From: Camelus ferus
Lineage: Eukaryota
Reading direction: 5' to 3'
NCBI RefSeq assembly: GCF_009834535.1
Contig: NC_045707.1
Coordinates: 19,964,001-20,028,000 of the forward strand
DNA length: 64,000 nucleotides
This document shows, piece after piece, positions 3,075 to 22,675 of this stretch. The translations under genes and the position numbers were made by a program. Each line of letters begins with the position of its first letter. Position 1 is the stretch's first letter. Below the pieces are notes generated by a model. That model worked only from the letters and a program-made list of their open reading frames with translations, searched no databases and was not told where the DNA came from.

Positions 3075-3920
3075 TGAGAACAGGCACATGAAAAGAAGCT
3101 CAATATTAATCATAGAGAATCACAAATCAAAACCATAATGACAGATCACCTGACACCTGTCAGAACGGCTATCATTAAAAAGACCACAAATAACAAACGT
3201 TAGCAAGGATGTGGAGAAAAGGGAACCCTTGTACACTGTTGGTAGGAATGTAAATTGGTGCAGCCATGTGGAAAACAGTATGAAAGTCCTCAAAAAAACT
3301 AAAAATAGAACTATCATGACTCAGCAATTCTAAGCTTGGGTATACATCTGAGAAAAATGAAAACGCTAATTCTAAAAGATACATGCACCCCCATGTTCAC
3401 AGCACCATTATTCATGATTGCCAACATAAGCAATTCGTGTCCGTCAACAGATGAATGAATAAAGAAGACTCACACATGTACACACAATGGAATACTACTC
3501 AGCCATAAAAAAGAATAAAATTTTGCCATTTGCAGCAACATGGAAGGACTTGGAGGATATTATGCTTAGTGAAGTAAGCCAGAGAAAGATAAAGCCTGTG
3601 TGATATCACTTATATGTGGAATCTAAAAAATAAGCTACTGAATGTAATGAAAAAGAGACAGACTCATAGATAAAGAGAACAAACCAGTGGCATTACAGTG
3701 GGAAGGGGTGAGGGGCAAAATAGGGGTAGGGAAGTAATAGGTACAAACTATGTATAAAATAGTTAAGTTAAATGATACATTGTACAGCACAGAATATAGC
3801 CCAATATTTTATAACTATAGATGGAGTATAACCTTTAAACATTGAGTCACTATGTTGTATACCTGAGACCTACATAATATTGTACATCAACTATACCTCC
3901 AAAAAAAAAGAAAAGAAAAA
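3075..3920 (+). mobile_element. LINE-1 3' fragment (ORF2 end, 3'UTR, A-rich tail)
   Basis: Typical L1 ORF2-end text (gaaatcacaaatcaaaacc...acctgtcagaacggctatc...ggagaaaagggaaccct), ending in an A-rich tail at ~3900-3921. Confidence 0.9.
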
Positions 3921-4469
3921 AGCATATGCATCAGGAAGAAGCAGGAGCAACAAGAGAGAAAAAGCCAGTTTGTCAGCACAGAGGTAGACAAAGTCCAGGT
4001 AAGAAAGATGTGAGTAAACCTTGCAAATCTCTTGTCTTTCCTTGTTCTTGGAAGCCATCAGTTCTCTGGCTCCCTTGTGTTTCCAGCTGAGGTAGGGTGA
4101 AGGTAGAATTGTGAAGAAAGCCATTCAGATTAGGGAGAGCCCTCGCAGTAAAGGATGTGTTTCAACTGCCTTGTTTCTCTGACTTGTTTTTTTCCCTTCC
4201 ATAACCTCTAAAGATAGAGGTGAAGCTAAGTCCAGGGTAACTGAAGTTTTCAAGGGCTAAGACACATTTTGCCAGTTAGAGTAAAGTGTATAAACCTTGT
4301 CTCTCCAGGTGTCTTTACCCTCTCCCATTCATACTATAATTATCTTGAATATTTCCTCTCTATATGTTGAGAACCATATAAGGCAATGTAATATTTTATT
4401 TCAATTTCCTAACATAATTAGAAAACTCATGAGAAGATGGATGGTATATAATTATCTGTATTTTTTACC

Positions 4470-5870
4470 CTTTCGGTTGCTTTTTATGGAATCCAGACAA
4501 GCTGAACCCCCAAGAAAGTTAGATGCTTCTTTCAGCCACTCAGAAGAGGAAAGCTGCAGCCAGTGCTGGAACCTGAAGTCTGGAGAGCCAGGGCCTGAGG
4601 AGGAGTGCTGAGCACAAGCCCTGAGGGCCCTCCTGTTAGCCACAAAAGGGAGTAGGCCTGGTGTCCCAAGGGGATGATAGCAGGAAGCACATGTGTTGAG
4701 GACTTACAGTGTACCAGCCATGCTGGTTGAGGGGGCTGACAGTGTTACTTTGATGCCTCCTATTTCAGTGGGAGATCAGGCTGATGGGGACTGGCAACTA
4801 AAAACAGCACCCAAGATTTTTAAGGCAGTGAAAGTATTCTGTATGATACTGTAAAGGTAGATTATACATTATACATTTGGTAAAATCCATAGAACTATGC
4901 AATGCAAAGAGTTGAACCCTAATGCAAGCTTTGGACTTAGGTGATAACAATGAATAATACATAATAATATAAACTAAATAAAAATTTAATATAATAATCA
5001 AATGTAACAAAGGTACCATACCAGTGGAAGATGTTAATGGGAAACTGAGGGGTTGGGAGAGAGGATACTGCTGGGGGGCAGGGGGTGTCTATACTTTATG
5101 CTCAATTTTTCTATAAACTTAAAACTAGTCTAAAATATAAACTCTTAATTAAAACAAGAAACTCATTACCCAAGAAGTGACAACTAATGGGAATTGATGA
5201 GGAACAAGTAGACGAGGACAGGAGTAAAGGTAGAAAGTCTGATTGCGAGGACTTGCCCCTGTCTTCACCCTCTGTCATTTCTCTCCGTCCTGGAGACGAA
5301 CGTACCACCACTTTCCAGCCTCCTGCCATATTGACACAGTCTCTCCTGTCATTCCCAAGGCACCAGAGTTGGAAAGTCAAGGAATTTCAACGGAAAGTCA
5401 TTTTTATATTGAAGATGAGAGTGACGCTGACTGAGGAACTGGAAATGGAGACAGGACCAGTTATGGATGGTGAAGTCAAGTCAGAAATGGAAGAATCTGA
5501 TAGGATCCAAAACTTCCCCAAGCTGGACAGAAGCAGTAGACATTCCCCATGGACGGGGTTGGATATCTCTACATCCAGTTCCCCCAACTTTAGGAGTGTG
5601 TCCCCAGTAGCTCTCTGAAGGCTTACTTCTCTTATTCTTGGAACTGATTTCTTCTTGCTTGTTAAGGGCCCCTCCTGGAACTGAGAGGAGTGAGTAAGAG
5701 AGGAAGAGGAACCCAGGACCACTTCTTGGACAGTTCCCTTTGGCAGTCTGCCAGGGTGGGTTATAGCACCACAGAGGAAGCTCTGTGGCACAATGATGTG
5801 TGGACTTTTGTACCAGTTTTAGGAGGCACCATAAACCATTGTTCATTATTGTCCAGACTGCAGTTTCTCA
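4470..5870 (+). pseudogene. Degenerate duplicate of the last three TIMELESS exons plus 3'UTR
   Basis: 4490-4740 aligns by eye to exon 1618-1843 and its downstream intron (gcacaagccctgagggccctcctgttagcc vs gcacaagctctgcgggccctcctgttagcc). 4775-4816 plus 5168-5230 matches exon 1974-2069; 5355-5435 matches the last exon (gcaccagagt...gaagatgagag...gactga); 5690-5850 matches the 3'UTR at 2570-2720. Contains stops and indels. Confidence 0.85.
4817..5167 (+). mobile_element. Old L1 3'-end fragment inserted into the duplicated TIMELESS pseudo-exon
   Basis: L1M-type 3'UTR text flanked by the direct repeat acccaaga (4809-4816 and 5168-5175), which rejoins the pseudo-exon. Confidence 0.7.
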
Positions 5871-6631
5871 CCTAGAATCCTGGATGAGAAAAGAAGTCAA
5901 TCCCTATAGTTTTGACACAGGCTTAGAAAGAGGTACTATCATGTATTTAATTAGGGTATTTCACTGTAATTAAGAATGTCAAAACTGAAAAGTTGCTCTG
6001 GTTTGATCTGACTTTCTGGTAGGTACTATCATCCCATTGCTCTACCTGTTAAATTCATTGAATAAGAATTATTTTGGGGTCTTTTACCTAGAAATCATTG
6101 GCATCCCTGTCTTTGATCTCCCTGCTTCCCCAGAAGATGTAAAGGAATTTTTCCTGATCTAAGTTTGGGTCTAGAGAAGTCCTTAGGTTGGGGAGAATAT
6201 GGGGCGGGAAAAGCAGTGGCCACAAAGGGAGCAGGCCTGATTGTTGGCATGGGGGCAAAGGTGAGGGCAAAGCCTGAACCACGAAGAGGTGGATAAATAT
6301 TTGTGAATGTTATGTCCTTCACTGTTTTCAGAGGGGTCAACTTTTTTGGCTGGGATAAAGAGAAGATCAGATCTAGAAAGCAGTGATTCAGATCACGGAA
6401 GCACCGAGGCAAAGGACGTGTTCAGACCTCTTTCCTCTGTCCTGTTTCTTCCCGGAGTAGGTGAGTATCACCCACAGCCTATAAGGTCTGATGTCCGGGG
6501 TGATTAAAGTTCCCAAGGGCTAAGACACTTCCTAGCTCTGACCAGTCTCGGTGTCTCTTCATCCCAGGCCTCTCCCCGCTTCCCAACCTGAGCACTGCTT
6601 CTTTCCAGCAGGGCTGTTCTGCTGACCCACC

Positions 6632-7396
6632 ATGGTCCAGGCTGTGCTGCTCCTTTGCTGTGTTTTCCTGTCCCCAGTGGCTGCCTTTCCAAGAAATGGC
6701 CAGAAAGGAGCCTTGAACTTCCAGCCGTCTTTCACAGAAACTGGGCATGCTCTGAACAGGCTCTCCAACCAGATCCCTCTCCCAGATCCCAAGACCTGCC
6801 AGGATCTTTTGGGCATGGCCTCCTCCTTAGCCCCTCTGCCTGAGTACCTATCCAGCTTAGCTCTGGAGGTGGTCCTGGAGGAGGTTGGCTGCCCAACTGA
6901 GGCCCACCTTCTGCAGCTTCAGCTTGTTAAGATGGGAGGAAAGGATACCACTGAAACCCTCATCCGTGAGAGTAAAAAGCACAATGAGGAGGAAGGGACT
7001 GGCATTACTACGGTTGTTCTGAGGGATCAGGGAGGACCCCCAGGGGAGCTGAGGCGGGTCCAGCGCTCAGTTACCCTTCCTGAGGCATGTAGGCTTGAAC
7101 ATAGGTGGGTGCTCTATGAGACAGCAAAACTGATAGCTGAATTTGCTGACAAGCTTTCTTCTACTGAGCTGGTAACAGAACTAAAGGCTTCTGCCATTAA
7201 TGTCACCCAGAAGTGCACGGATGAGTCTTGGAAGCATTTGGAAGCAGTAGGGAAACGGCTGATGAAAAGCCCTGAGGCTAAGGGCCTCACGATGCCTATA
7301 GAAGATCAGATATACTTTGCCAAGCGTACCATAACCCTTCTGCTGCACATTATACTGGAACATATACAGGAAGCTTCTACAGGCTTCATTGGATAA
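6632..7396 (+). CDS. APON: Apolipoprotein N (ApoF-family secreted proprotein), intact 254-aa single-exon ORF
   Basis: Kozak context accATGG; hydrophobic signal peptide MVQAVLLLCCVFLSPVAA; ApoF-family pro-region (C-x-x-L...LAPLPEYLSSLALEVVLEEVGC...LQLQL); furin-type site RRVQR/S. Splice acceptor at ~6608 upstream and ATTAAA at ~7744. It lies between TIMELESS and APOF, where Apon sits in mouse and cattle as I recall. Confidence 0.85.
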   Translation: MVQAVLLLCCVFLSPVAAFPRNGQKGALNFQPSFTETGHALNRLSNQIPLPDPKTCQDLLGMASSLAPLPEYLSSLALEVVLEEVGCPTEAHLLQLQLVKMGGKDTTETLIRESKKHNEEEGTGITTVVLRDQGGPPGELRRVQRSVTLPEACRLEHRWVLYETAKLIAEFADKLSSTELVTELKASAINVTQKCTDESWKHLEAVGKRLMKSPEAKGLTMPIEDQIYFAKRTITLLLHIILEHIQEASTGFIG

Positions 7397-8009
7397 GGAG
7401 AGCCTGTGAGGCATCATATTTCCTTTCTCAAAGGTCTCCGATAGGACTGTACACAAGGACTGAGCACAACAAGTCGTTAGAAATGGACAGAAGTATGCTA
7501 TTCTTTTGATCCTAGAGCTAAAAGACATGTGACCGGAGCCAGCTTTGTCCCCTCTCTTAGCAAGTCCTAGCCGCTATTTTTTCGCCCAATTTCTCTCTCT
7601 TTCAGTTGTCGAATACTGTGGATTTATTATGTACTAGACGTGAAGGATATTGTGACCTTTCCCCATTCATGTGCCATTCACTTTCTAATTGCCCAACTGG
7701 GTACTGTAATTTGCTTATGTTAATTTTTAAACTGAAAAGAGAAATTAAAAGTTGCTTCTATATCAGAATCACAGTTACTTGATCTCTCTTAACTCCGGGT
7801 CTCCATGGCTTCTTTTGTGAACTAGCAATAGAATGTGGCAGGGACATGTTGGAAATGCCAAGGTCTTTTGAGGCTGAGTGTGTGACAAGGGGACAAGGTT
7901 CAGTCAGTACAAATGGACAAACATTTGTAGGAGTCATGCCCTTGCTGATCACTGGGGAAAGCAACCATCTTCCCTCCTCATGGGACAGAGAGCTGGGCAG
8001 AGTGGGTCT

Positions 8010-9400
8010 AGACCTACTAGAGCAGTCTCACTTCTCACTGACTGGATTTTGTGGTAATTTGGGGCCCCATAACTGCATGAAATGAGGTCCATGTGAAGCA
8101 GAGGAAGTCCCTGGTGATCTGGATGGGGAGACCAAGAAGAGAAATAAGGTCCCATTCCTCATTCCAGGCCCCAAACTTAAAACAAAGAGAGGCTGGGGGT
8201 TGTTGGGTAAGATGTCCTCTGACTGAGCCCCGGGCTCCTTCAGACCACAGCCCAAGGGAAACAGTTTGAGTGTTGTCTTCCATTCTAGCGTAGTCCGATC
8301 CAGCTAGGCTTCACCGAGACCCATCATGACCTGCTCCTTTACTGCCTCCTGCTGTACCTTGTGGTTGTCACTTCATGTGGCACCCAGAAAAAGACCTTTT
8401 TCCTCCTCTCTGGGGATCTGGCCACCCTCTGCAGGCTCTTGGTTTTGCCAGATTCTGCTCCCAAAGCCCTTGCCTGGCCTCACCCACTTTGTCCTCCACC
8501 AAGCACGTCTCTGGAGCAGGCTGATCACCAGCCTGATTCCTAGACCCTGAAGCTTCATCTTTACAGCCAGAGAATAGGAAAGCCGTACAAGGTGCCACAC
8601 GGACAGCAGCACAGAGATGGGCTTCGCAGGGGATTCTCTGGTCTCTGTTCTGCAGCTAGTAGGCAGGGAACCTGCCTAATACAGGGATACAGGGAAAGAA
8701 AGATATGCCTTCTCTACCCTAGAATGTTAGTATGAGCAAGAGCAGCGTGGTCCAGCTGTTGCCAGCAGTGGGAATGTGCTGCAAAGTCAGGCACAGCTTT
8801 GTACTCTGCTGCTTTTTTTTTTTTTTAACATTTTTTATTGATTTATAATCATTTTACAATGTTGCGTCAAATTCCAGTGTTCAGCACAATTTTTCAGTCA
8901 TACATGGACATATACACACTCAATGTCACATTTTTTTCTCTGTGAGCTTCCATAACATTTTGTGTATGTTTCCCTGTGCCATACAGTATAATCTTGTTTA
9001 TCTATTCTACAATTTTGAAATCCCAGTCTATCCCTTCCCACCCAGTACTCTGCTGCTTAGAACTACTTCAGTAGACCAAGGAGTGAGGCTGAGGTGGGGC
9101 CATAGACCTGAGCTGCAGCCTTCTGATGATCACGCAAAGGTTGTCTGGGGCCCAGGGGTTACTGGTGAGTTCTGTGCTTAAACCTGCAGCGAAGGCTGGG
9201 GTTCAGCAGCTGATCCAGTATTACTATGAGAAAGAGGCAAATACCCCTCTGTCAGAGACTGAGGAGGAGGGGTTGGGAGGCACCACAGATGTAAATTGCC
9301 CAGGGGTGACAGACAACAACCACGACGTCAGAGGACAAGGCTCCTGAAGAAGTGAACTCAGCTCCTACTCATTGTGGGCCTTATTCAAGGACACTGTTCC
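8010..9400 (+). pseudogene. APOF-like pseudogene (duplicated, two-exon remnant)
   Basis: Exon-1 remnant cagtctcacttctcactgactggattttgtg/gtaatttggg (~8023-8060) matches 21487-21527. The body matches APOF (gattctgctcccaaagcccttgcctggc; ttaaacctgcagcgaaggctggggttcagcagctgatccagtattac...gagaaagaggcaaatacccct) but has many frameshifts and stops and an L1 insertion. Confidence 0.9.
8815..9044 (-). mobile_element. 5'-truncated L1 3' end inserted in the APOF pseudogene, 14-bp TSD
   Basis: Poly-T followed by L1 3'UTR text; perfect direct repeat gtactctgctgctt at 8801-8814 and 9045-9058. Confidence 0.88.
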
Positions 9401-9921
9401 TAGGAATCTTACACTTCGTATAAATAAAGGGGTTACACACAGGAGAAATTAAAGTGAATTAAAAATTATCACCAACTCCTTTGTCCTAATCCTCAGATAT
9501 GGAATGAAATATTCAACTATGAGTATGTCACTCTGTCATTATCCATTCTAGTGAGGAGAATCCTCTTACCTCAAAAAAAAAAAAAAAGTTTTCCTTCATA
9601 ATAAAATTGTGTGGCTTCTTAAATCACACATATGTTTTCTTTATTCTATTAGGTTCTGTGTACTGTAATAAGTCTAGGTTTCCCAAACAAAGATCCGATG
9701 GCCCCAGCAGCAAGAATGCTGCATAGCCCAAGAGATCTTTCTTCGATGTGCTAATCTGTGCATTGAAAATCAGAGGTGACATAAATCTTAACAGTCTTTG
9801 CTGAATTTCCAGGTGGTTTGAATGAGAATGATCCTCTGATTAAGGAAGGGAAGAGGGACCTGGGGGTGAATTAGAGCCAATTACAACCTTAGGAGTTTTA
9901 TGACTTCTTGCACAATTTCTA

Positions 9922-18869: not shown

Positions 18870-19945
18870 TACGTTGCTTCACAGAAACTGTAGAGTCCTC
18901 GGGATTCCCCAGGGATTTAGTGTCTGGTCAGTTCAGTAGGGCTGAACCCCTTCGCACCTAGTTCTTGCTACTTCCAATTTTGGAAGTGTGTCCTTACAGA
19001 TCTCCCCCTCTTCTTTCTTCTGTCTGCTCTTAGTTGTCAAGGGCCACTCCTGAGAACTGAGAAGTGAAATAAATAGAGGAAAGGACTCTGAGCCCCCGCC
19101 CCACCTCTGGCCTGTTTTCTTTGGCTGTCTGTCAGAAGTGAGTGACAGCACCAAAGAAACTTTTTGCCGTAACGCTATGTAGGAATCTGTACCAGTTTCA
19201 GAAGGCATCCAATACCTTCTTTCCCTAATTTTTGGACTGTAGTTATGGCTAGACCCCAAATGAAACCAAATGTTTGGAGTTTTGGTTAGATTTGGAAAGT
19301 GTTACTACCTAGCTGATGAACATGTTTCATTTATGGTTTGCATTGGAATTAGAAAAGTGAGAAATAAGAGTTGCACTGATTTCATTTAACTTACCAGTCT
19401 TTTCAGTTTTCCTGGCCTCCACTCAATGTATCTTTTTGAAAAAGAACTTATGGAATGTTTTGGAGGTCTCTTACCAGAGATCATCAGCCTTTCTGCCTTA
19501 TCCATTCTCCCCTTCAGAAGATACAGAGGAACTTTTCCTCATCTCATGTATAGGATCCAGGGTAAAACCTTAGGACAACAAGGATACGGGGCAGAACTAG
19601 CAGGGCGAAAAGGGGAAAGGCCTATTTGTCAGTATGGGCCAAAGGTGAGGAGGATAAAGTCTGGACCTAGAAGAGATGTATAAATATTTGCAAATGCTAT
19701 GTCCTTCACTGTTTTGGGCACTGTCAGCATTCTGGCTTCCTCGTGATTCTGGCTGGGGTAAGGGAGAAAGAGCAATTAAAAAATTCAGAAAAGTCATCCC
19801 AGTCATGAAGATACCAAAGCAAGGGAGATGTTTGGACTTTTTTGTTCCTCTGGCTTGTTTCTTCCTCAAAACAGTTGAGGATCTCTCATGGCCTTTTAAG
19901 AGTGGGAGTGAAGTATGTCCAGAGTAACTGAAATTTCCAAGGCCT
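18870..19945 (+). repeat. Third copy of TIMELESS 3'UTR plus the APON-upstream spacer
   Basis: 18885-19220 matches 2390-2720 and 5570-5835; 19430-19945 matches 2925-3065 + 3955-4275 and 6100-6525. Confidence 0.75.
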
Positions 19946-20053
19946 GACACTTCCTAGCTCTGACCAGTCTCGGTGTCTCTTCATCCTAGGCCTCTCCCCG
20001 CTTCCCAACCTGAGCACTGCTTCTTTCCAGCAGGGCTGTTCTGCTGACCCACC

Positions 20054-20830
20054 ATGGTCCAGGCTGTGCTGCTCCTTTGCTGTGTTTTCCTGTCCCCAGT
20101 GGCTGCCTTTCCAAGAAATGGCCAGAAAGGAGCCTTGAACTTCCAGCCGTCTTTCACAGAAACTGGGCATGCTCTGAACAGGCTCTCCAACCAGATCCCT
20201 CTCCCAGATCCCAAGACCTGCCAGGATCTTTTGGGCATGGCCTCCTCCTTAGCCCCTCTGCCTGAGTACCTATCCAGCTTAGCTCTGGAGGTGGTCCTGG
20301 AGGAGGTTGGCTGCCCAACTGAGGCCCACCTTCTGCAGCTTCAGCTTGTTAAGATGGGAGGAAAGGACACCACTGAAACTCTCATCCATGAGAGTAAAAA
20401 GCATGATGAGGTGGAAGGCACTGGCAATACTATAGTCATTCTGAGGGATCTTTGGGGGACCCGCAGAGAAGCTTGGATAAATCCAAAACTCAGCCACTCA
20501 CCCTGAGGAGTGTGTTAATGATGGTGAGTACACCCACTGGAGTGGCTGGTCTACCTGTTAGCTCAGATGGTGGTTGAATTTGCTGAGAAGCAAACAGCTT
20601 CCATGTTGCTAGCTGATGACACAATTTAAAGCGTTGCTATCAACAACCCCTAGAACTGCAGATATGAGTCTTGGAAACATGTTGAAGAATTAGACAAAGG
20701 CTGAAGACACCTCCACGTTATGGGCCTCTCAGTGTCTATAGATGATTACAATATAATTTATCAAATGTTCCACAGTTATTCTGAAGTGTTTTGGGGGAAA
20801 CTGTTTCAGGAATTTGTCCAGATTATTTAA
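20054..20830 (+). pseudogene. Second APON copy, truncated (150-aa ORF 20054-20506); 3' half decayed
   Basis: Identical to 6632-6945 up to 20367. A +1 shift near 20450, a TAA at 20478-20480 in the ancestral frame and loss of the furin site follow; a degenerate C-terminal remnant (EWLVY..AQMVVEFAEK) continues to ~20830. Confidence 0.85.
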
Positions 20831-21771
20831 TTCAGATATTCAATGTCACCTAGGTGACAAGTCTGATTTCCCACGACTCTGTTCAAGGATGGAACACAGT
20901 AAGTAGGCAGAATGTTGGACACCACTTAGGACAGATGCATGTTCTTTATTTCATCCCAGTGCTAAAACACACAGGTGACTGGTATTAACCTTGCCCCTCT
21001 CCACTTAGTAGCTCTCAGTCCTTATTTCTCATTCCATTTTCCCTTTTTTTCTTTTCTTTATTTCAGTTATCCTATGCTGGGCATGTAATAAGCATGAGAA
21101 ATATTTTGACTTGTTTTTCATTCATCTACCCTGTGCTAAACCCCCAACTTGACAATATAGCTTGCTAATTTAATTTTTAAACTGAAAAGAGAAATAAAAT
21201 AAAAGATCATGAAAGACATCTAATCTGTTCTGATTCTGTCTCCTTTCTCCTATCATGGACTAGAGTAGGAATGTGGCAGGGAATTATAGGAAATGCCAAA
21301 GAACAGGGTTTTAGGTATTGAGGTTGAGTGTGACAAGGGGACGAGGTTTGAGAAGCCAGCACAAACAGACAAATATTTGCAAAGATTACATCTCTTACTG
21401 GTGATAGGGGAAAACAAATACCGACTTTCTTCATGGAACAGAGGAGTAGGCAGAACAGGATCGAGGAGCTACCAAACCTAGCAAGGCAGTCTCACTTCTT
21501 AATCGCTGGACTGTGTGGTAATTTGGGATCCCCTACAAATGGGTGCAAGTAAGGCAGAGGAAAACCCTGATGACCTGAAGATTGAGAAGGCCAAGTGGGA
21601 ACAATTGGGTTGCATTTCCTGTTTCTTAGGCCTTTACCTGAAAAGAACAGAAGTTTGGAGGTAATAGATGAGATGTGCCCTGAGTCCTGGGCTCCTTTCA
21701 GACCACAGCCCTTAGGGACATGGTTTGTATGTTTCTGGTTTCTCCCCTCTCCAGCTCACTCTGTTCCAGAC

Positions 21772-22675
21772 ATGCGTGGCCTCAGACTCATCATGATGCT
21801 GATTGAGCTACTTCTTTGCTACTATCCTGCACGCTGTGGATGCCATTTCATATGGAAACCAGACAAATGTCTTGATGCATCTTCCCTCATCCTTGGGATC
21901 CTGGCCACCTTCCTCAGACCCCTTGTCTTGCCAAATGCTGCTCCCAAAGTCCCTGCCTGGCTTCATCCACATGGCCCCTCTACCCAAGTTTCTGGTAAGC
22001 CTGCCACTGATGATCGCCCTGGAGGAAACGGGCTGTCAGGCTGAGGTACGGGTCCTGCAGCTTCAGCTCTATCGCCAGGTGGGTGTAAATGCTACCCAGA
22101 TCCTCATGAGACATCTTCAAGAGCTCGAGAAAAGCAGAAGCACAGGAAGGAGAGTGTCAGTGGATGCCCTGGCCTCTGCTCTGCAGCTGTTGGCCAGGGA
22201 GCATCCAGGCCCACAGAGGGCCCGACGAGCCTTCTCTGTCAAGGACTGTGAACAGGAGCAGGAGCAGGGTGTGTACAATACAGTCCAGCTGTTGCCGGTA
22301 GTGGGAACCTTCTACAGCCTGGGCACAGCATTGTATTATGCTGCTCAGAACTGCCTGGACAAGGCCAAGGAACGGGGCCAAGATGGGGTCATAGATCTGG
22401 GTTATGATCTTCTGATGGCCATGGGTGGGCCCAAGGGACTACTGATCGGTATTGCACTTAAACCTGCAGTGAAGTTTGGGGTTCAACAGCTGATCCAGTA
22501 TTACAGTGAGAAAGAGGCAAACACCCCTCCACCAGAGACCAGCAAGGAGGTCTTGGGAGACACCTTAGTTGCGAGTGACCTGGAAGAAACAACTACCATG
22601 GTCCCTTTGGTATCAGAACTAGTCAGTTCAGCACCTTCCTGGAGTTGGAACTTATTCAAGGGCTATGGCTTATAA
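21772..22675 (+). CDS. APOF: Apolipoprotein F (syntenic copy); signal peptide and body are in different frames in this sequence
   Basis: ATG 21772 gives MRGLRLIMMLIELLLCY. The rest (ILHAVDAISYGNQTNVLMHLP...RARR/AFSVKDC...GYGL*) is in another frame from 21824. Exon 1 remnant ends at 21517 (GT donor), exon 2 acceptor at 21754, AATAAA at 23022. Confidence 0.85.

Follow-up and report, generated by a model that had tools for sequence, protein, structure and literature searches.

Evidence for recurrent gene conversion between APON and a neighbouring ancient APON pseudogene in camelids

Background

Interlocus conversion between a gene and its pseudogene is known from several pairs, among them CYP21A2/CYP21A1P, GBA1/GBAP1 and SBDS/SBDSP. 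In pairs of the CYP21A2 type, identity between the paralogs is 96-98% over their whole length, and the flow known from medicine runs from the pseudogene to the gene. Another relevant system is the primate gamma-globin pair HBG1/HBG2, which shows regional concerted evolution with fixed boundaries.

Here we describe two APON copies that belong among such systems and differ from them in several respects. The stretch analysed, called the window below, comprises 64,000 nucleotides of Camelus ferus (GCF_009834535.1, contig NC_045707.1, positions 19,964,001 to 20,028,000 of the forward strand); coordinates refer to the window unless stated otherwise, and all features lie on its plus strand. The gene order at the locus is TIMELESS, APON, APOF, STAT2. 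We refer to the functional APON gene as copy A and to the APON pseudogene as copy B.

The APON copies share with CYP21A2/CYP21A1P, GBA1/GBAP1 and SBDS/SBDSP a tandem unprocessed pseudogene lying a few to tens of kb away, exchange in short tracts, and, with the CYP21A2 type, identity able to support unequal crossover. Unlike those pairs, however, they have a single tract with sharp boundaries, outside which identity is only about 60-68%; the pseudogene is far older (predating the artiodactyl/perissodactyl split), and the net flow seems to run from gene to pseudogene. With HBG1/HBG2 they have in common recurrent conversion of part of a duplicated gene, one sharp and stable edge, and grouping by species inside the tract but by paralog outside it; the difference is that both globin copies are functional, whereas copy B is dead throughout. 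Conversion of this type is well known, and by our reading the unusual elements are the age of the pseudogene, the contrast between tract and flanks, the flow from gene to pseudogene and the lineages that serve as controls.

Structure of the APON and APOF locus

Copy A is an intact frame of 254 aa (APON coding sequence, 6632-7396) with a full Apolipo_F domain (Pfam PF15148; 277 bits, positions 1-197 of 199, E = 7e-83, above the gathering score). Its nearest named relatives are cattle APON ('ovarian and testicular apolipoprotein N') and 'apolipoprotein F-like' proteins of many mammals, and it is 73-75% identical in amino acids to cattle and whale APON. Exon 1 (6307-6460) extends from an upstream ATG, where RefSeq models start, to the donor GT at 6461, and in camel the upstream frame stops before the main ATG. 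Intron 1 occupies 6461-6608, exon 2 starts at 6609 and the ATG lies at 6632. About 0.8 of the APON words are present in RNA runs from reproductive tissue. According to a passage in PMC8438545 that cites O'Bryan et al. 2004, ApoN is a relative of ApoF found in HDL/LDL of bovine follicular fluid.

Two minor features of this gene can be added. The acceptor of exon 2 (6606-6611) is a tandem CAGCAG of the NAGNAG type, and an alpaca-specific change at 6610 abolishes its second AG in all four alpaca copies. An older Camelus ferus model of APON (CB1_000449033) contains a 56-aa internal tandem duplication without counterpart in the window, dromedary or alpaca, which is probably an assembly error in a repeat-prone exon.

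Copy B is an unprocessed (duplicated) APON pseudogene. Its body spans 20054-20850 and starts with an open frame of 150 aa (20054-20506) about 1.3 kb 5' of the APOF exon. Compared with APON it carries eight frameshifting indels and five in-frame stops, all of them 3' of A position 7028 (20451 in B), and it matches only positions 1-86 of Apolipo_F (118 bits, above the gathering score). A and B are homologous across the intron and the exon-1-like region and over at least 900 nt upstream, with the exon-1-like donor degenerate in B. Orthologs of B are found directly 5' of APOF in buffalo, hippo and black rhino, and several disabling lesions are common to them. All five B orthologs examined have a TAA at codon 142; camel shares a TAG at codon 193 with buffalo and hippo (absent in rhino) and a TAA at codon 228 with buffalo and rhino (absent in hippo). 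There is also an insertion at 7102 in the B copies of camel, buffalo, hippo and rhino (13-15 nt, similar but not identical in length), and at 7308 one of 1 nt in buffalo and rhino B, with a 61-nt insertion at the same site in hippo B. The lesions common to buffalo, rhino and hippo show that B was dead before the artiodactyl/perissodactyl split. The B-specific words of 20338-20480 are present at a share of 0.46 in one reproductive-tissue RNA-seq run, a hint that the B region is transcribed or read through; a search for RNA contigs of that run on the upstream flank of B found none there.

The two copies belong to larger paralogous segments. In a self-BLAST of the window, 5653-9284 (unit A, APON plus a relic) aligns with 19028-22564 (unit B, the APON pseudogene plus APOF) at 65-77% identity. 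The relic, which we call F1 (8404-9284), lies 3' of APON, resembles APOF in pieces (33-59% aa identity) and groups with the relics of buffalo, alpaca and rhino. The main coding exon of APOF (21827-22675), the functional partner in unit B, gives a full Apolipo_F match (positions 1-199, 238 bits), so that copy A as a whole, copy B over the first 86 positions and APOF in full all match family PF15148. The APOF-like relic beside APON, together with the self-alignment, shows that the ancient duplicated unit was made of an APON-type gene and an APOF-type gene. The duplication of this two-gene unit (APON-type, then APOF-type) preceded the artiodactyl/perissodactyl split and was followed by reciprocal decay: APON survived in unit A, whose APOF-like gene was lost, and APOF survived in unit B, whose APON-like gene was lost. 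Our literature search for duplication, reciprocal decay, pseudogene evolution or conversion at the APON/APOF locus returned no relevant paper, and the present account documents this undescribed architecture of a duplicated unit with reciprocal decay.

RefSeq models of dromedary and alpaca join APON exon 1 (6307-6460) directly to the APOF main exon (from about 21780 onward) across some 15 kb, leaving out APON exon 2 and copy B, which suggests APON-APOF read-through transcripts. The signal-peptide region of APOF (21820-21830) contains a T in the window that dromedary and alpaca lack, and as a result the reading frame shifts between the upstream ATGs and the body of APOF. This T may be either a true variant or a fault of the assembly. 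Alpaca has a 1-nt insertion of its own, a few codons 5' of this site.

A near-identical tract shared by the two copies

The tract in copy A (6524-6945) and its counterpart in copy B (19946-20367) are 422 nt long and lie at an offset of 13,422. Direct alignment and a fixed-offset comparison agree on a sole mismatch, 6565 C against 19987 T, so that in the window the tract is 99.8% identical and the aligned flanks 68% (upstream) and 61% (downstream). Contained in it are the final 85 nt of intron 1, the acceptor AG (6607-6608), 23 nt of 5'UTR with the CCACCATGG start context, the start codon at 6632 and codons 1-105, hence the signal peptide and the greater part of what precedes the RRVQR site (aa 141-145).

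The two edges are of different kinds. Upstream, identity drops sharply at 6523/6524 beside a 2-nt indel, with a second indel, of 10 nt, about 30 nt further upstream; the 100 nt 5' of the tract are about 23-35% identical at the fixed offset and 68% once aligned. Downstream, a zone where conversion is older or variable follows in A (6946-7031), which is 83.7% identical to B in Camelus (14 differences in 86 nt) and whose B counterpart (20368-20454) ends at the first frameshift, the 1-nt insertion at 20451. Beyond 7031 the identity is 58-61%, with many indels. Only one difference separates A and B of Camelus in the 422 nt of 6524-6945, but there are five in the next 51 nt (6946-6996), three of which are CpG transitions.

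The initial annotation had called 422 bp of near-perfect identity with one differing base, an abrupt upstream drop, a downstream decay, and a content of acceptor, Kozak sequence, signal peptide and pro-domain. All of this is confirmed by the coordinates above, and the GENECONV check that it proposed also points the same way. In our GENECONV-style permutation of polymorphic sites the observed run comprises 100 agreeing sites, compared with a maximum of 24 in 20,000 shuffles (P < 5e-5). The longest run without mismatch is 380 nt, in direct orientation. Chance can be dismissed as its origin, P being about 3e-61 for an identity of 68% and still about 2e-26 for one of 84%; by its length the run would be a candidate NAHR substrate. 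The GC content is 0.566 in the tract and 0.42-0.48 in the flanks, a difference confounded by coding sequence, and we make no claim of GC-biased conversion.

Independent samples confirm both copies as DNA. Words specific to B immediately 3' of the tract (20338-20480) have a share of 1.00 in at least 19 DNA runs from two camel species and several studies. Contigs from two independent dromedary-type runs cover 19560-19975 without mismatch and end exactly 30 nt into the tract, which is where a de Bruijn graph is expected to break at a repeat (k-1, with k = 31). The contig of a third run reaches 30 nt beyond the T at 19987 and so ties this base to the B flank. Altogether, the parts of the B tract that are tied to B-specific sequence in independent reads are the first 30-72 nt and the last 30 nt or so. 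The dromedary assembly, gap-free here, has both copies about 13.4 kb apart with the same tract and upstream edge, and these are also shared by both copies in the alpaca assembly.

Gene conversion between the copies

Comparison with other species reveals a mosaic history. In the flanks A and B are 58-69% identical, compared with 78-86% between orthologs. In the tract, the identity of A and B is 99.5-100% in alpaca and 88.1% in buffalo, next to the 99.8% in camel; A of camel and A of buffalo are 87.4% identical there. IQ-TREE analyses of three partitions gave a split between A and B with 100% support in both flanks, and in the tract a grouping by species (98% for alpaca A plus B, 99% for buffalo A plus B). 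When the tract sites were polarised with buffalo and rhino, 6549 was found to be derived in both Camelus copies, and 6610, 6636, 6673 and 6675 in all four alpaca copies. The upstream edge is identical in all camelids compared, and the downstream edge varies, being located at 6945 in Camelus, at 6983-6996 in alpaca B2 and at 7005-7010 in alpaca B1; the alpaca B copies are identical to A up to 6996 and 7005, respectively.

The tract thus has the features by which gene conversion is recognised: it is bounded, its tree is incongruent with that of the flanks, derived sites occur in both paralogs, its identity goes beyond what constraint would give, and both copies are real DNA. A single crossover cannot explain the tract, because it is bounded on both sides by diverged paralogous sequence, and the flanks of each copy remain paralog-specific, as expected for non-crossover interlocus conversion. 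Since derived sites are common to A and B within each lineage, at least one conversion took place per lineage after the split of Camelini and Lamini, and the difference between one mismatch in 422 nt and five in 51 nt in Camelus implies nested events of different age. We therefore regard recurrent, non-crossover, non-allelic (interlocus) gene conversion between two old APON paralogs, with a net flow from A to B, as very probably the correct explanation. Conversion between otherwise old paralogs had already been put forward in the initial annotation, and it is upheld by paralog-specific flanks, by the grouping of the tract by species, and by reads and other assemblies that confirm both copies.

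Two explanations that dispense with exchange in the genome have to be weighed against this one. The identity could be an artefact of assembly or polishing, with a truly divergent 5' half in B (or A) over which the reference had copied the other paralog. The five N gaps between the copies in the window are in keeping with such a fault, as is the 56-aa duplication of CB1_000449033 with its resemblance to an assembly error; yet contigs built from independent reads of two species run from the B flank into the tract without mismatch and break at k-1, B-specific 3' words occur in at least 19 runs, and the gap-free dromedary assembly and that of alpaca have the same tract with lineage- and copy-specific substitutions that no collapse would create, which makes an artefact extremely improbable. 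The other explanation is that purifying selection on a functional 5' half has kept the copies identical. One might cite for it the open frames of B (150 aa in camel, 141 aa in the rhino counterpart) and the RNA run that holds 0.46 of the B-specific words. However, the copies also agree over 85 nt of intron, in the UTR and at every synonymous site; fin whale has lost B by deletion, and in hippo and buffalo it has decayed; and the derived substitutions common to A and B in each lineage are impossible to obtain from selection alone, so that we consider this practically impossible. A separate reading, in which the 5' half of B is a used element (an alternative exon in transcripts from APON exon 1 to APOF, of which RefSeq has models, or a secreted 150-aa protein consisting only of the pro-domain), seems very unlikely to us; conversion would then be maintaining a function, by keeping the acceptor, start codon and signal-peptide/pro-region frame of B the same as in APON.

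In the alpaca assembly GCA_048564905.1 the whole TIMELESS-APON-APOF-STAT2 locus occurs twice on one chromosome (at 7.55 Mb and 1.06 Mb), the two loci being 6.5 Mb apart and 99.7% identical. Either a large segmental duplication of recent date or misplacement of haplotypes during assembly may account for this. If they are alleles, 'recent duplicate' would have to be read as 'allele', which does not remove the conversion signal.

Timing and direction of the exchange

The published splits are 4.4-8 Ma for dromedary and Bactrian camel and about 16.3 Ma for Camelini and Lamini (PMC12337305); the flanks differ by 0.33% between Bactrian and dromedary and by 2.2% between Camelus and alpaca. The T at 19987 is common to B of Bactrian and dromedary. 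In addition, two changes, at A coordinates 6578 and 6641, are private to dromedary B, and there are none in A of either species. Because 19987T is found in both, the last Camelus event predates the split of dromedary and Bactrian camel, and it postdates that from alpaca and llama. Gene flow between domestic camels (PMC12337305) could in principle be the source of the common 19987T, against which counts that the locus differs by 0.2-0.5% between Bactrian and dromedary. The conversion, described as recent at the outset, is so in relation to the age of the paralogs but not in absolute terms.

A single recent conversion in the Bactrian lineage would account for just one difference in 422 nt. It is nevertheless highly unlikely, since dromedary shows this tract too, B-specific 19987T included, the alpaca tract was homogenised separately and ends at another 3' position, and the clustering of five differences in 6946-6996 as against one in 6524-6945 indicates nested events. 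Regarding direction, the pseudogene might have overwritten the functional gene, with a net flow from B to A as from CYP21A1P to CYP21A2. The mechanism is symmetric, and at site 6726 alpaca B1, B2 and A2 have T and A1 has C, with T also in hippo B, a pattern readable as a transfer from B to A. Against this, over tens of millions of years the tract has remained the intact, conserved 5' half of APON (cattle and whale APON are 73-75% identical in aa), and B copies that were not converted accumulate stops. Moreover, the sole event with a readable direction points the other way: alpaca B1 and B2 differ at 6997 and 7005, B1 carries the A-type base at both, and the T at 7005 is derived in camelid A copies only. 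These two sites show, as far as sequence comparison can, that the alpaca B1 event ran from A to B. A net flow from B to A is thus unlikely, and the evidence favours a net flow from APON to the pseudogene. The last Camelus event probably had the same direction, although this is unreadable from its sequence because the copies were probably already near-identical, which would make a transfer from B to A almost neutral.

The initial annotation had left it open whether the 5' half of a pseudogene was resurrected or a functional gene overwritten. Copying of the gene over the pseudogene is the favoured reading, and resurrection does not hold, as the frameshift at 20451 and the later lesions remain.

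Other lineages illustrate what happens to B under different conditions. In hippo, the equivalent of about 3141-9766 of the window is missing, with APON and the F1 relic deleted (whales keep APON), and the B tract contains two stops and a 410-nt 5' deletion. Buffalo B has two frameshifts inside the tract, its conversion being older (88% identity to A). Fin whale has kept APON, and in place of the B exon region (equivalent to about 19863-21091) it has some 670 nt of AT-rich sequence that is unrelated. Fin whale was also considered as a further test of conversion and is uninformative in that respect, the B exon being deleted; it shows only that B is dispensable, and the loss or decay of B in fin whale, hippo and buffalo together leads to the same conclusion. 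The 5' half of B is intact only where a live donor has overwritten it recently.

Mechanism and implications

We propose that in camelids the 5' half of B has been homogenised again and again with the live copy A by non-crossover interlocus gene conversion. The exchanged stretch would reach from inside the small intron to about codon 105-125, with an upstream edge held at 6523/6524, where an indel and heavy divergence would end the homology, and a downstream edge varying between events from 6945 to about 7010. In this way B retains an acceptor, a start codon, a signal peptide and a pro-region that are free of lesions, and its 3' half remains dead. The alpaca lineage has had events of its own, one of them very recent. 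At the molecular level, the process may consist of heteroduplex repair limited by the divergence of the flanks. Between paralogs of 60-68% identity, the only stretch long enough for strand invasion would be the one that earlier events presumably made identical, and conversion might thereby be self-sustaining within the tract and blocked at the indel-rich upstream edge.

The locus offers a well-resolved case of how long interlocus conversion can persist: about 420-490 nt have stayed homogenised with a pseudogene that has been dead for tens of millions of years, and meanwhile the surroundings diverged to about 60-68% identity. The related lineages act as built-in controls, with hippo lacking the donor, fin whale lacking the recipient and buffalo having old conversion only. 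For annotators, the tract explains why copy B looks like a truncated gene, as well as trouble with short-read assembly and gene models at the locus. The 380-nt direct repeat is, as the initial annotation proposed for the tract, a plausible substrate for an unequal crossover that would delete APON in camels, and the sole practical consequence would be a possible 13.4-kb copy-number variant that removes this gene.

A different arrangement is found in black rhino. Its APON-type copy adjacent to APOF has an A-type 5' flank of at least 2.8 kb (camel-equivalent) and is preceded by the F1 relic. From the equivalent of about 7035-7045 onward this copy is of B type, and its 141-aa open frame is annotated as a protein. 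This appears to be a rearrangement specific to the rhino lineage, and its 3' breakpoint falls within the homogenised zone described above.
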